Positions 41,760 through 45,608 of a stretch of 64,000 bases of DNA are shown here, piece after piece. Location of the stretch: the sequence record LC680884.1. One strand, given 5' to 3'. A model generated the notes under the pieces. It did no database searches and was not told the DNA's origin. It saw nothing but the letters and a program-made list of their open reading frames with translations. The translations under genes were made by a program, and so were the position numbers. Each line of letters starts with the position of its first letter. Within the stretch, counting starts at the first letter, position 1.

Positions 41760-43437
41760 CATACTTAAATACCATATTACCACAATCCCATATTCTATAG
41801 AAATTTGTGTTATCCATTATTTCAAACTCTGTTAAACCATTATCATATAGCTCAGGAAATTTATTTTTGAGTTCCTGTTTTCTAAAATTAAATCTATGAA
41901 TTCGTTTAGTACCATCATTTCTATCCACATACCAGTAATTTGGTCGGCTATTATGAGTATATTCAAAATCATTCTTAATATATACATTTCCTTCAGACCA
42001 TCTAATATCAGCATATGTTATAATGCTATCATATTCATAATTCTTAATAAAATATTTAAATAACTTTCCAAATGCACCTATAGCACGATAGTCCCTATCA
42101 GTTGCAAATCTACTAAGTTCATAATCAAATTCTCCTTTATGTTTTGAACCTAGTGCTAATCTTCTTTTAACAAATGTCATAATAGCAATTAATTCATCAC
42201 CATCTTCTTTTGGAAGCCATAATCCTAATTTAATACTAGCATTATCTTTTCCTTGGATATGATTCCGTTCTAAGAATTCATTTTTAAGAGAACTATCAAT
42301 TTCCTCAATATAACATTTTCTTGCATATATTTTTTCTTGATTATTTATTCCAAGAATATGAAGAAGTTTGAATTTAACTAACTCATTTTTGTTAACCCAT
42401 TCATCTTCAAATACATGAATAAGTCTTACTCCATGTTCCTTGCATTTTCTAGTCTTATCGATATGATAATTCTTTCCTTTATGTTTTTCATTGTGCCAAT
42501 ATAAACCGTCATATTCAATGGCTATTTTCAATTCTGGTAAATAAATATCTAACTCTTTACCATTTAATATTGTTCTATTTCTAAGAATTATTTCACCTTT
42601 ATAATTTTCTGAAATAAAATCTATAATTTCTTTTTCTCCTTTGGATTGTGTGAATATATTAGAGCATTTTGGACATCCTTCACCGTTAAGTCTATTGTTA
42701 GGATCTGCCTTCCATTTATTATTACAAATTAAACATTTATGCATAATTGGAACACGTCTACCTTTATATTCTTCTAATGCTATAAGATTTCCGTTAAATA
42801 TTTCATTTAATCTTTCTTGATAATTTTTATTACTTCTTTTCTTATTATTACAGGAAGGACAATATACCTTATTCTTAGTTACTAATATATTACCTGCAAT
42901 TGCAGTAAAAATATAATTGCATTTTTTACATTTTAATTTACATTTACCAGATAATTTAGTAAATTCTAAAATTTCATATGGTAAGAAACCATATTTTTCT
43001 TTTATTTTTTCTTCAAAGTGTTCAATATCTTTAGTGTTAGCTATATTTGATCTCTTTTGACCACATGTTCTACACATATGATATCTGAGTCCATCTTCTT
43101 TTATAGCGCCGTTTTTCATATTTGAACGTTTAATATCAAAGGTATCTTTACAAAAATTACAGGTAACATTGTATTTACCATCCTTAAAAGAATTAATTAT
43201 GTAAGGATAGTAACCACATATTTTAAATAATTGATCATTTATTTCTTTTACAGTTTCTTCAAATGATTTCTTTTTAAAATTATTAATTAAAAAATTTTTT
43301 ACTTCTTCATTATAATACTTTTTAACACCCTTAGAAAATGATGACTCTATATTATTTTTTGTCATAAATCTTTCTAGTGTTTTAATTGCCTTTCCTGTTA
43401 ATTCTGCTAATTCTTTTTTAGAATAAAAGTTTTCCAT
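41740..43437 (-). CDS. Free-standing endonuclease-like protein: HTH, Zn-ribbon repeats, Vsr/DUF559-like PD-(D/E)XK domain, C-terminal Hef-like/GNAT (Mom-like) domain
   Basis: YSKKELAELTG; six CxxC; ELDIYLPELKIAIEYDGLYWH; YELSRFAT...ITYADIRWSEGNVY...RIWDCG. Confidence 0.7.
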   Translation of the reverse strand: MENFYSKKELAELTGKAIKTLERFMTKNNIESSFSKGVKKYYNEEVKNFLINNFKKKSFEETVKEINDQLFKICGYYPYIINSFKDGKYNVTCNFCKDTFDIKRSNMKNGAIKEDGLRYHMCRTCGQKRSNIANTKDIEHFEEKIKEKYGFLPYEILEFTKLSGKCKLKCKKCNYIFTAIAGNILVTKNKVYCPSCNNKKRSNKNYQERLNEIFNGNLIALEEYKGRRVPIMHKCLICNNKWKADPNNRLNGEGCPKCSNIFTQSKGEKEIIDFISENYKGEIILRNRTILNGKELDIYLPELKIAIEYDGLYWHNEKHKGKNYHIDKTRKCKEHGVRLIHVFEDEWVNKNELVKFKLLHILGINNQEKIYARKCYIEEIDSSLKNEFLERNHIQGKDNASIKLGLWLPKEDGDELIAIMTFVKRRLALGSKHKGEFDYELSRFATDRDYRAIGAFGKLFKYFIKNYEYDSIITYADIRWSEGNVYIKNDFEYTHNSRPNYWYVDRNDGTKRIHRFNFRKQELKNKFPELYDNGLTEFEIMDNTNFYRIWDCGNMVFKYEKKNKG

Positions 43438-43471
43438 TTAATAATATTCCCCCATTTTATATTATACAATT

Positions 43472-43484
43472 ATAATATATATTT
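43472..43484 (-). promoter_or_regulatory. Early-type promoter AAATATATATTAT
   Basis: Exact 13-mer upstream of 43437. Confidence 0.7.
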
Positions 43485-43537
43485 GTTTAATGGTACTTAA
43501 TTATTAAATGGAAAACTAAAATAAAATTATCTAAATT

Positions 43538-44743
43538 TTACTCAATATATTTATCTATATCAAGATTTACAACTTTTAGTGTCATATCGTGAAATGCTTT
43601 TAAAGATGCGTTGAGCAAAGAAGTCCCAATACGGTTGGAAATTATTCCAACATTCCTAATACCTAAACGATAGTAGAGTTCTCCCGCACATTTACTACAA
43701 TATTGTTTATTTAAACAATATAAAGGACTTCTAATCTTGATTATCTTACCAATATAGTTGTTAATATTATCAGAAGTCAATAATACTAGTTTATTATTTT
43801 CTACAATATACCTATACATGAACATGTTTGCATTACCTTTATTAAGTTCAATGGTTATCGTCTTTTTCGTATGACAATCAGATCCTTCATCATCCAAAAC
43901 GATATTTTGGAAGGCAGCACTAAGTTTCTTAGATTCATAACCACCTTCTCTAGTACCAACAGCACGACTGTATGATGCTTGAGTAATAATATCAGAATAA
44001 TATTGAATCTCTTCAGGAGGTATTCCTTCCATTAAAGAAGCGTCTGAGATATGAACCTGATCTGGATTTGCCAAGTTTTTAATTGCGCCCCTTAAAAGAG
44101 TGGTATTCTTATAGTTGTTACCAAAACTTCCACGAGCACCACTAGCATAAATTTGATAGTCAGGAATATCAGATACTCTTCCTTTTGCATCAGCTACTAA
44201 CTGTTTTTCAATTTTATTAATAGCAATTAAATCGCCAGATTCCAATGCTTTTTTATGCTCTTGAATTAATTTCTTTTTAAGAGCATCTGTTTCTTTAGGA
44301 ATCTCTAGTAGATCATAAGTTAGTGATGCATTTAAGAATTTTGCAGTAATAAATCCAAGCCATTGTAATTTGTCAATATAATCTGCAAATTCTTGCACTG
44401 TAATTTTATCTTCAATCAAATATTCAGAGAGAGTATTTTCCAATCCACCAATATTACCATCATCAAATGAAATATTTTGGTATCCTACTAATTGAATAAT
44501 CTTAGGGGATAACATAAATAAATTAAAAATATATCTTCCAACAGTTGTTGTCATACTTTTATCATTATATAATCTACCCTTTGGTAATACAAATATATCA
44601 TTTGGCTTGAACATAGCTTTTGTATTCTTTTTATTAGCGAAAAGTTTTTCTAGCATTTCTAATGTAATATCTTCCTCAGAAAGAGAAAATAAAAAGTCTT
44701 TATCCTTTTCCGAAATAGATATTGGTTTTTGTACTTTTTCCAA
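43538..44743 (-). CDS. rpoC: Phage multisubunit RNAP beta' fragment (bridge helix/trigger loop region)
   Basis: TTVGRYIFN, SGARGS, AVGTREGGYESKKL (bridge helix), SDCHT, IRSPLYC...CSKCAG, IGTSLLNASLKAFH (trigger loop); TTG start. Confidence 0.85.
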   Translation of the reverse strand: MEKVQKPISISEKDKDFLFSLSEEDITLEMLEKLFANKKNTKAMFKPNDIFVLPKGRLYNDKSMTTTVGRYIFNLFMLSPKIIQLVGYQNISFDDGNIGGLENTLSEYLIEDKITVQEFADYIDKLQWLGFITAKFLNASLTYDLLEIPKETDALKKKLIQEHKKALESGDLIAINKIEKQLVADAKGRVSDIPDYQIYASGARGSFGNNYKNTTLLRGAIKNLANPDQVHISDASLMEGIPPEEIQYYSDIITQASYSRAVGTREGGYESKKLSAAFQNIVLDDEGSDCHTKKTITIELNKGNANMFMYRYIVENNKLVLLTSDNINNYIGKIIKIRSPLYCLNKQYCSKCAGELYYRLGIRNVGIISNRIGTSLLNASLKAFHDMTLKVVNLDIDKYIE

Positions 44744-44774
44744 TTATTTCAACCTCCATATCTCTATATGTCTC

Positions 44775-44786
44775 TATTCTATTGTT
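44775..44786 (-). promoter_or_regulatory. Late-type promoter AACA-N6-TA
   Basis: AACAATAGAATA, 32 nt upstream of the RNAP TTG. Confidence 0.65.
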
Positions 44787-44805
44787 CATAGTAAATGTAA
44801 ATTTT

Positions 44806-44818
44806 AAATATATATTAT
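44806..44818 (+). promoter_or_regulatory. Early-type promoter AAATATATATTAT
   Basis: Exact 13-mer; the only downstream ORF before the terminator is the 13-aa mini-gene. Confidence 0.7.
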
Positions 44819-44857
44819 ATTAATGATAAAAGTTTTATTAATATGGAGGTTTTTCAC

Positions 44858-44899
44858 TTGGGAAAAGATATTACATTAGAAGCATTAGTTAATAAATAG
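44858..44899 (+). CDS. 13-aa mini-gene MGKDITLEALVNK
   Basis: GGAGGT RBS 7 nt before TTG; own promoter and terminator; shares 17 nt with the RNAP gene. Confidence 0.55.
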   Translation: MGKDITLEALVNK

Positions 44900-44937
44900 T
44901 GAAGATAACGATAGATTAAGTTCTATCGTTATCTTCA
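44900..44937. terminator. Terminator hairpin (15-bp stem) between the mini-gene and the convergent gene
   Basis: TGAAGATAACGATAG / CTATCGTTATCTTCA. Confidence 0.75.
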
Positions 44938-45608
44938 ATTTTATCATATATTTTTTTGAGAATATTAGTTTCACTATATGGCGCATTACTCTCACTTAGT
45001 TCTATTAATTTATTAAATTTTTCAATCATATCATCAGTCATAGCAAATGAATATTTTTTATTAAATTCATTTATATCACCATAAACTTGATTTAAATTAA
45101 CAAATATTTCACCAGCATGAACCAGTTCATGAACTGTTAATGATAATGGTACTAGACCTATTATATTATTATAATGATCATCTAATACTTCCTTTATAAT
45201 AGTAAAAGAATTAAATTTTTTTCCTAAAAGGATATTTCTACTAATTGAAAGATTAATTATGTCATGTATAGTAAAAGGATAATGGTGAAATTCTAATGAC
45301 GCATCTTCTGCTGATACATTTCCTAAAACAGCACAATGAGATAAACCTAATTCATTCTTGAGGAAACCAATATAATGGGAATACTCATCACTTGATCTAA
45401 TTTGACTTTTAATAGATCCAACTAATTTTTTCATTTTAGTATCATCATAGATATCAGTAAAATAAAATTTTTCTTGGAAGTAACCATCCATATTTTTTAA
45501 TAAAATATTATCATTATTCTGTACACTCTGAATATTTACAATATTATTGACTTTAGCAGGACTATTAATTTTTTTTATCATTTTCACATTTCCTCCATTT
45601 CTGAACAT
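44916..45608 (-). CDS. HNH-like fold protein (paralog of 56866-57570)
   Basis: EY..YIGFLKNEL.L..C...LEFHHYPFT...GLVPL..TVHELVH.G.IFVNL. Confidence 0.55.
   Translation of the reverse strand: MFRNGGNVKMIKKINSPAKVNNIVNIQSVQNNDNILLKNMDGYFQEKFYFTDIYDDTKMKKLVGSIKSQIRSSDEYSHYIGFLKNELGLSHCAVLGNVSAEDASLEFHHYPFTIHDIINLSISRNILLGKKFNSFTIIKEVLDDHYNNIIGLVPLSLTVHELVHAGEIFVNLNQVYGDINEFNKKYSFAMTDDMIEKFNKLIELSESNAPYSETNILKKIYDKIEDNDRT

Follow-up and report, generated by a model that had tools for sequence, protein, structure and literature searches.

The short early transcription unit between two late genes of the Bacillus jumbo phage PBS1 is very probably the scar of a deleted early operon, g263-g262, and not an evolved stand-alone gene. 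The sequence analysed, referred to here as the window, is a stretch of 64,000 nucleotides of record LC680884.1, which was identified as PBS1. At this locus the genome of phage AR9 is longer than that of PBS1 by 804 bp, the breakpoints of the missing segment coincide with a 6-nt microhomology, the loss is restricted to PBS1, and the promoter and terminator that survive on either side are identical to elements that are active in AR9. An earlier note, made from the letters of the window, had described the unit as a stand-alone gene and a shrunken inverted copy of the 5' end of the divergent RNAP gene. Its coding part was found instead to be the first 10 codons of g263, cut short by the PBS1-specific 804-bp deletion. 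The same note had also considered that the unit might be a relic. This came close to the truth in that the unit is a gene remnant, but what it records is the deletion of g263-g262. A literature search returned no paper describing the difference between PBS1 and AR9 at this locus.

Alignment of the region gave identities of 99.6% to AR9, 95.9% to Goe21, 93.1% to Internexus and roughly 72% to BpSp. In AR9, Goe21 and Internexus a common promoter and SD lead into full-length g263, followed by g262 and a common hairpin; the AR9 genes encode proteins of 179 aa (g263) and 90 aa (g262), and Internexus has an additional HTH gene in the g263-g262 interval. PBS1 tracks these relatives up to codon 10 of g263, where its sequence switches to the final codons of g262. 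The switch falls on the hexamer CATTAG, one copy of which spans codons 9–11 of g263 in the Internexus-type allele present in PBS1, the other lying at the end of g262. PBS1 is thereby left with a g263 that lacks codons 11–179, and nearly all of g262 is gone. Synteny, and sequence identity over the promoter, the leader and the first codons, mark the remnant as an ortholog of g263; of a complete reading frame of about 179 aa, PBS1 has only the 10 codons. No copy of either gene was recovered elsewhere in the whole PBS1 record by a search that was positive for AR9 and Internexus. The g263 protein is itself an orphan that gave no match in Pfam or PHROGs and fell into just two protein clusters among 5.8 billion sequences.

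On grounds of parsimony, the event would be a deletion in PBS1 rather than an insertion in the other phages, because g263-g262 is present in three relatives and in four read sets and because the PBS1 ORF enters the stop region of g262 out of frame. In the PBS1 ancestor, g263 and g262 would have formed an early operon behind a virion-RNAP promoter and a strong SD, with a bidirectional terminator at its end. A deletion between the two CATTAG microhomologies would then have taken out 804 bp, and a longer stretch if the ancestor resembled Internexus. What stayed were the promoter, the leader with its SD, the first 10 codons of g263, a tail of three codons in a shifted frame and the terminator (Table 1).

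Table 1. Features of the remnant early unit and its flanks, in window coordinates.
Feature	Position	Strand	Basis or remark
Late gene, virion-RNAP beta-prime-like middle fragment (AR9 g264 homolog, 401 aa)	43538-44743	-	PHROG 2962, E = 3e-112; AR9 record
17-mer arm in RNAP gene	44657-44673	-	Codons 24-29 (EDITLE)
SD region of RNAP gene	44751-44761	-	Second arm of 11/11 inverted match
Late (non-virion RNAP) promoter of RNAP gene, AACA-(6N)-TA	44775-44786	-	Consensus from PMC5312081; TSS A44775
Early (virion-RNAP) promoter element AAATATATATTAT	44806-44818	+	Exact match to AR9 early consensus; annotated 'early promoter' in AR9 record
SD region of truncated g263, ATATGGAGGTT	44841-44851	+	One arm of 11/11 inverted match
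13-codon remnant ORF, product MGKDITLEALVNK	44858-44899 (TTG 44858, TAG 44897-44899)	+	Alignments with AR9, Goe21 and Internexus
17-mer arm in remnant	44865-44881	+	g263 codons 3-8
Deletion junction, 6-nt microhomology CATTAG	44883-44888		Alignments with AR9, Goe21 and Internexus; contig ends
Bidirectional intrinsic terminator hairpin	44900-44937	both	Perfect 16-bp stem, 6-nt loop
Late gene, AR9 g261 homolog	44916-45581	-	Convergent with remnant unit

Four public sequencing runs, consisting of two RNA-seq runs of AR9-like infection and two metagenomes, were utilized as contigs rather than reads to follow the junction outside the genome records. Contigs reaching the junction were found in all four runs and every one of them departed from the window at 44883–44888. 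Past the junction they led into g263, in both AR9-type and Internexus-type alleles, or came from the 3' end of g262. One metagenome contig was identical to PBS1 over 44843–44888 and thereafter continued as full-length g263, which means that the gene-start allele of PBS1 exists in nature on an intact g263. A query centred on the junction recovered at most one of the four sampled words in any run, a weak measure at only four words. The 13-codon ORF as such was absent from every relative compared and from the four read sets, and the conservation check proposed in the earlier note thus ended with no relative that keeps the mini-ORF.

The individual parts of the unit, as distinct from its interpretation, had been read correctly in the earlier note. 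The early promoter placed at 44806 agrees with the early consensus derived from dRNA-seq of AR9, AAATATATATTAT-(6N)-G(+1), where the late consensus is AACA-(6N)-T(A/G) (PMC5312081); in PBS1 the G is found at 44825 after a spacer of 6 nt. It also agrees with the transcription start mapped in AR9, since the early TSS of g263 at 220691 (Table S2, PMC5312081) corresponds to G44825 of the window. The late TSS of g264 at 220741 (Table S3, PMC5312081) corresponds to A44775, and the leaders measure 33 nt for g263 and 32 nt for g264. Nine exact copies of the promoter element occur in the window, and 12 matches were counted when up to one mismatch was allowed, against 4.5 expected by chance. The ribosome binding site that had been noted at 44841–44851, with the same 11 nt at the RNAP gene, was recovered as an 11/11 match, with the GGAGG core at 44845–44849, 8 nt 5' of the TTG. 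The g263 SD has the same sequence in AR9 and Goe21 and agrees at 10/11 positions in Internexus. The TTG-initiated ORF of 13 codons is present as described; codons 1–10 are the start of the g263 homolog, and codons 11–13 (V, N, K) with the stop come from the end of g262 (its final codon, its stop codon and its 3' UTR) read out of frame. Within the SD, at 44843, there is also an ATG in frame with the ORF, from which 18 codons would be read, and the Internexus annotation uses this start.

The terminator was also found to be real. The hairpin was called on both strands, where shuffled sequences give an expectation of 0.0, and on each strand a GC-containing stem-loop with a T-rich tract was found. 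It is invariant in all four relatives, and PBS1 does not differ from AR9 between the late promoter and the SD, both included, nor over the hairpin. The ORF at 44916–45581 and the RNAP gene share the minus strand. The mini-ORF therefore sits antisense between two late genes that point the same way, and the hairpin is a terminator for both directions: on the plus strand it closes the early g263-g262 operon and on the minus strand it follows the g261 homolog. The stop codon of the latter lies inside the hairpin loop.

Published expression values from AR9 place the lost operon among the early genes. At 5, 20 and 40 min the values were 964, 1860 and 1626 for g263 and 835, 2934 and 1826 for g262, and both transcripts were abundant as early as 5 min; the corresponding values for g264 were 1.7, 52 and 596 (PMC5312081). 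Strong termination at operon ends was reported in the same study (PMC5312081). We infer from contig depths which of the two RNA runs is early and which is late. In the early-looking run an RNA contig with a depth of about 350 ended at 44943, past the T tract of the hairpin, and was followed by library poly(A), this 3' end being that of AR9-like infection data. The RNA contig of the RNAP gene stopped exactly at 44775, and in the late-looking run no contig covered 44786–44862. The divergent RNAs are same-sense, as had been stated in the earlier note, and they do not overlap. Because the sequence from promoter to SD and the hairpin are identical to those of AR9, PBS1 probably still makes an abundant orphan early RNA of about 119 nt, running from 44825 to about 44943, in which folding predicts the terminator hairpin to be the dominant structure. 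Translation of the 13 codons may occur but would be incidental, yielding a peptide without selected function from a scar known in a single lineage.

The gene on the other side of the divergent promoters encodes part of the virion RNAP. A profile search with the RNAP-subunit family matched bacterial beta-prime at about residues 565–915, with the bridge-helix region included; Pfam, NCBIfam and a single-sequence PDB search gave no match for the subunit. Assignment of the product to beta was rejected since the profile search places it on the middle of beta-prime, and the naming of g264 in the AR9 transcriptome paper agrees with the beta-prime assignment (PMC5312081).

The start of g263 resembles the start of this RNAP gene in inverted orientation. 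In PBS1 the two SD regions match at 11/11 positions, ATATGGAGGTT at 44841–44851 being the reverse complement of 44751–44761, and a further 17/17 match joins 44865–44881 to 44657–44673 with the reading frame equal in both genes, so that the exact 17-nt match reported in the earlier note stands for PBS1. It is not conserved as a perfect match. In AR9 and Goe21 the SD match is 11/11 and the 17-mer is reduced to 15/17 (I to M, E to V), in Internexus the values are 10/11 and 17/17, and in BpSp neither match is found. The BpSp locus keeps the early promoter and has an unrelated gene downstream of it, with no detectable relationship between g263 and the BpSp gene at the equivalent position. At 17 distant loci neither the SD match nor the 17-mer was present and the longest inverted match did not exceed 11 nt. 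On the RNAP side BpSp retains the motif [ED]D[IV]T..L..LF, as do homologs with as little as about 35% identity; the motif lies within the first ~45 residues, outside the part that can be aligned to solved beta-prime structures. At the protein level the similarity of the g263 start to the RNAP subunit amounts to 8/10 residues with E = 0.21.

How far the 17-mer departs from chance depends on the comparison. Under a second-order Markov model 0.03 perfect inverted repeats of at least 17 nt are expected per window at loops of up to 500 nt, and only two long-loop perfect inverted repeats of such length were found in the 64 kb. Against real gene starts the signal was weaker: among 2,346 pairs of gene 5' regions the 17-mer was the longest shared word, but unrelated pairs reached 16 and 15. 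Chaining of blocks of at least 10 nt between gene starts gave a score of 27 versus 23 for the next-best pair; chaining of matches of at least 8 nt was discarded as non-discriminating at 27% GC, many unrelated pairs scoring higher. Given the residues DITLE, identity of the codons at all five positions has p = 0.035 under the codon usage of this phage. The chance check called for in the earlier note thus leaves the match an outlier to the Markov model and a less striking one among gene starts.

The similarity belongs to full-length g263 and predates the deletion. A template-switch 'correction' of a quasi-palindrome as the origin of the perfect 17-mer in PBS1 was set aside as Internexus and metagenome contigs share the allele in full-length g263. 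By the same distribution of alleles the perfect 17-mer is an allele shared by recombination and not a PBS1-specific event. Overall the similarity stands out only modestly in the statistics and may be either an old inverted copy or a coincidence. An old local inverted copy, or a gene-conversion patch, from the RNAP gene has a little better than an even chance of being correct, and we favour it over coincidence because the statistics combine with the adjacency of the two genes. Coincidence, aided by shared translation-initiation and codon preferences, is a serious contender whose chances fall somewhat short of even. If copying did take place, it would have run from the RNAP gene to g263, the RNAP motif being ancestral, since this motif is conserved in distant homologs and g263 is an orphan; no outgroup with g263 was present among the genomes compared.

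A functional version of the copying scenario was considered, in which the 5' end of g263 (SD, start and DITLE.LE.L helix) was captured by local inverted duplication as a docking signal, such that the g263 protein, and accidentally the scar peptide, competes for or pre-occupies a partner of the RNAP subunit. The partner would be another subunit or a packaging factor. This was kept as a candidate because the motif is conserved in the family, the pair is the top outlier among gene starts and the codon identity goes beyond codon bias, and we consider it very improbable all the same.

Similarly small is the chance that the nested inverted repeats form a selected RNA element that blocks translation of the RNAP gene on minus-strand read-through RNA. 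On such an RNA the RNAP SD and codons 24–29 would be paired with the complements of the g263 SD and 17-mer, and transcripts from the late promoter inside the loop would escape. The minus strand from 44900 to 44640 does fold into a nested helix in which the SD is occluded (MFE −51.4 kcal/mol, z = −4.1), the late TSS at 44775 is within the loop, and the neighbouring homing-endonuclease gene has a similar geometry. The late-looking run, however, lacks an RNA contig spanning 44786–44862. The upstream arms are located in AR9 within antisense g263, some 1 kb past the g261 terminator, and the upstream gene is also late, which leaves a read-through block without obvious purpose. The repeats are missing from BpSp and from the 17 distant loci. 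Furthermore, all three positions that vary among the relatives lie on the g263 side and weaken the pairing, with no compensating change on the RNAP side among the relatives compared; such one-sided, uncompensated changes give no sign of the covariation that selection on RNA or DNA pairing would leave.

Slimmer still is the prospect that the 13-aa peptide is an early micropeptide which mimics the EDITLE.L segment of the RNAP and acts as an assembly decoy or inhibitor, as the earlier note had proposed. A strong SD with good spacing and a perfect early promoter speak for its expression, DITLEAL is retained in the peptide and the motif is conserved across the RNAP subunit family, and the nucleotide identity is above the level set by codon bias. 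Against this, the ORF exists only in PBS1 and only through the deletion, its three C-terminal residues are the read-out of a frameshift, and the relatives have a 179-aa protein in its place. The two motif residues altered in AR9 and Goe21 and the E value of 0.21 for just 8/10 residues likewise argue against mimicry, as does the timing, with the virion RNAP late and the peptide early. The proposal was consequently left unsupported.

It is hardly credible that the 17-nt repeats flank an invertible segment, 44674–44864, whose inversion would swap the N-termini in frame as a phase-variable switch. The segment contains both promoters and both gene starts, and the perfect 17-nt arms, 191 nt apart and in equal frame in both genes, have a geometry like that of known invertons. 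The arms are nevertheless imperfect (15/17) in AR9 and Goe21, no recombinase was found near the locus, and inversion would merely trade a functional start for a remnant; a strand-change joint was seen in 0/4 runs, weak evidence as it comes from contigs only. That the deletion is an artefact of assembly or of the phage stock, true PBS1 having g263-g262, is just as hard to credit: the PBS1 junction was read from deposited genome records alone, but MF360957 and LC680884 are independent deposits with 100% identity over the region, junction included, and the junction has a clean 6-nt microhomology.

Reading the unit as a deletion scar has several consequences. A neat cassette of promoter, SD, ORF and terminator can be the residue of a deletion, a caution that near-identical relatives bring to light. 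PBS1 is a natural knockout: this phage grows on laboratory B. subtilis and can dispense with g263 and g262, two genes whose transcripts belong to the more abundant ones early in AR9 infection. In addition, the scar represents a natural minimal transcription unit of the virion RNAP, with a consensus promoter, a predicted transcript of about 119 nt and a terminator, and it could be used as a compact template for in vitro and in vivo assays of this poorly understood enzyme.

T7 Gp2 and T4 AsiA are small, conserved and folded phage proteins that target host RNAP. Their function is of the kind that the earlier note had in mind. The predicted PBS1 peptide would share early expression and small size with them, but unlike them it is a lineage-specific truncation product of 13 aa. 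Translational control by sequestration of the SD or the start codon, with a promoter inside the hairpin, is known for T4 e, I-TevI and mobE. The PBS1 locus resembles this type of control in that inverted arms bracket a promoter and only transcripts started upstream carry both arms; it differs in that neither a spanning transcript nor covariation was found and the arms are not conserved. An 18-bp repeat at the start of the homing-endonuclease gene (43428–43517) was observed separately and is a better fit to sequestration of the T4 type.

The closest counterpart of the PBS1 unit is the early operon g263-g262 of AR9, transcribed from P263 (Lavysh et al. 2016, 2017, PMC5312081). Position, orientation, promoter, leader, SD and terminator are equal and the first 10 codons are homologous, PBS1 having the Internexus allele; in PBS1 the operon has shrunk to an ORF of 13 codons with a predicted transcript of about 119 nt. 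The unit is in this respect ordinary biology, the scar of a known early operon. Like other microhomology-mediated deletions and pseudogene remnants in phages, it shows a clean loss between short direct repeats, and it is not unusual that the surviving signals frame a meaningless short ORF. What sets the PBS1 scar apart from other such remnants is that the genes lost were highly expressed early orphans.

The slot downstream of the early promoter at 44806-44818, which is itself conserved, is a hotspot of gene turnover among PBS1 and its relatives. Two genes occupy it in AR9 and Goe21, three in Internexus, one of which encodes a double-HTH DNA-binding protein, other, unrelated small genes in BpSp and none in PBS1 (positions concerned in the compared stretches L004 and L005: 3369-3674 and 4343-5979, respectively). 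Evidence on alleles comes from window positions 44843-44888 and 44234-44327 and from the compared stretches L001, L003 and L004. Despite an overall identity of 99.6% between PBS1 and AR9, the g263 start in PBS1 (44843-44888) was found to be of the Internexus type, set apart from the AR9 and Goe21 allele by four linked differences, and the AR9/PBS1 differences within the RNAP gene were found to cluster in a 94-nt patch (44234-44327). AR9/Goe21-type and Internexus-type g263 alleles were furthermore found together in each of two metagenomes. Taken together, these observations indicate that co-circulating relatives exchange DNA by patchy recombination.

In Internexus the g263 homolog is annotated from an ATG internal to the Shine-Dalgarno (SD) region, adding five residues (MEVFH), and the corresponding reading in PBS1 would span 18 codons. 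As this ATG has no SD of its own, the TTG at 44858, used in the AR9 annotation, is the likelier start.

Features around the RNAP gene and the g263 remnant
Feature	Coordinates	Strand	Remark
Exact early-promoter element, two copies	43472-43484 and 44806-44818	opposite orientations	bracketing the late RNAP gene
ATG within the SD region	44843-44845	+	in frame with the TTG start
Perfect 18-nt inverted repeat, 54-nt loop	43428-43517	-	between RNAP gene stop (43538) and homing-endonuclease gene start (43437)

Public names for the RNAP gene (43538-44743) disagree. PHROGs and the GenBank entry for AR9 call the product "beta subunit, C-terminus", the AR9 transcriptome tables list it as "beta-prime, middle", and Staphylococcus jumbo-phage records have it as "beta-prime"; a profile search of the PDB favours the middle region of beta-prime. 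Of the promoter copies flanking this gene, one serves the homing endonuclease downstream and the other the divergent g263 remnant. The two also surface as an inverted repeat (14-nt arms, 1321-nt loop), which was dropped as a separate repeat since the promoter consensus accounts for the match. To the right of the remnant, the g261 homolog (44916-45581) is one of the proteins exclusive to uracil-DNA phages in a 2023 survey, with g278/g282 of phiR1-37 as homologs (PMC10303552, Table 3). It is expressed late in AR9, from a mapped TSS roughly 490 nt upstream that lies antisense to the start of a neighbouring virion-protein gene.

The start codon (ATG) of the Hef-like/HNH homing endonuclease gene falls within the downstream arm of the 18-nt repeat. 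An early TSS and an additional late TSS mapped in AR9 correspond to window positions 43465 and 43476, and the loop contains both. A transcript reading through from the late RNAP gene would include both arms and hide the endonuclease start codon (fold z = -5.0); promoter-initiated RNA would not. Among the relatives compared, AR9 has an identical repeat and Internexus none; the homing endonuclease gene itself is missing from Goe21. In phage T4, I-TevI, mobE and e have read-through RNA that hides the start, with a promoter inside the loop. The architecture at the PBS1 homing-endonuclease start is the same.
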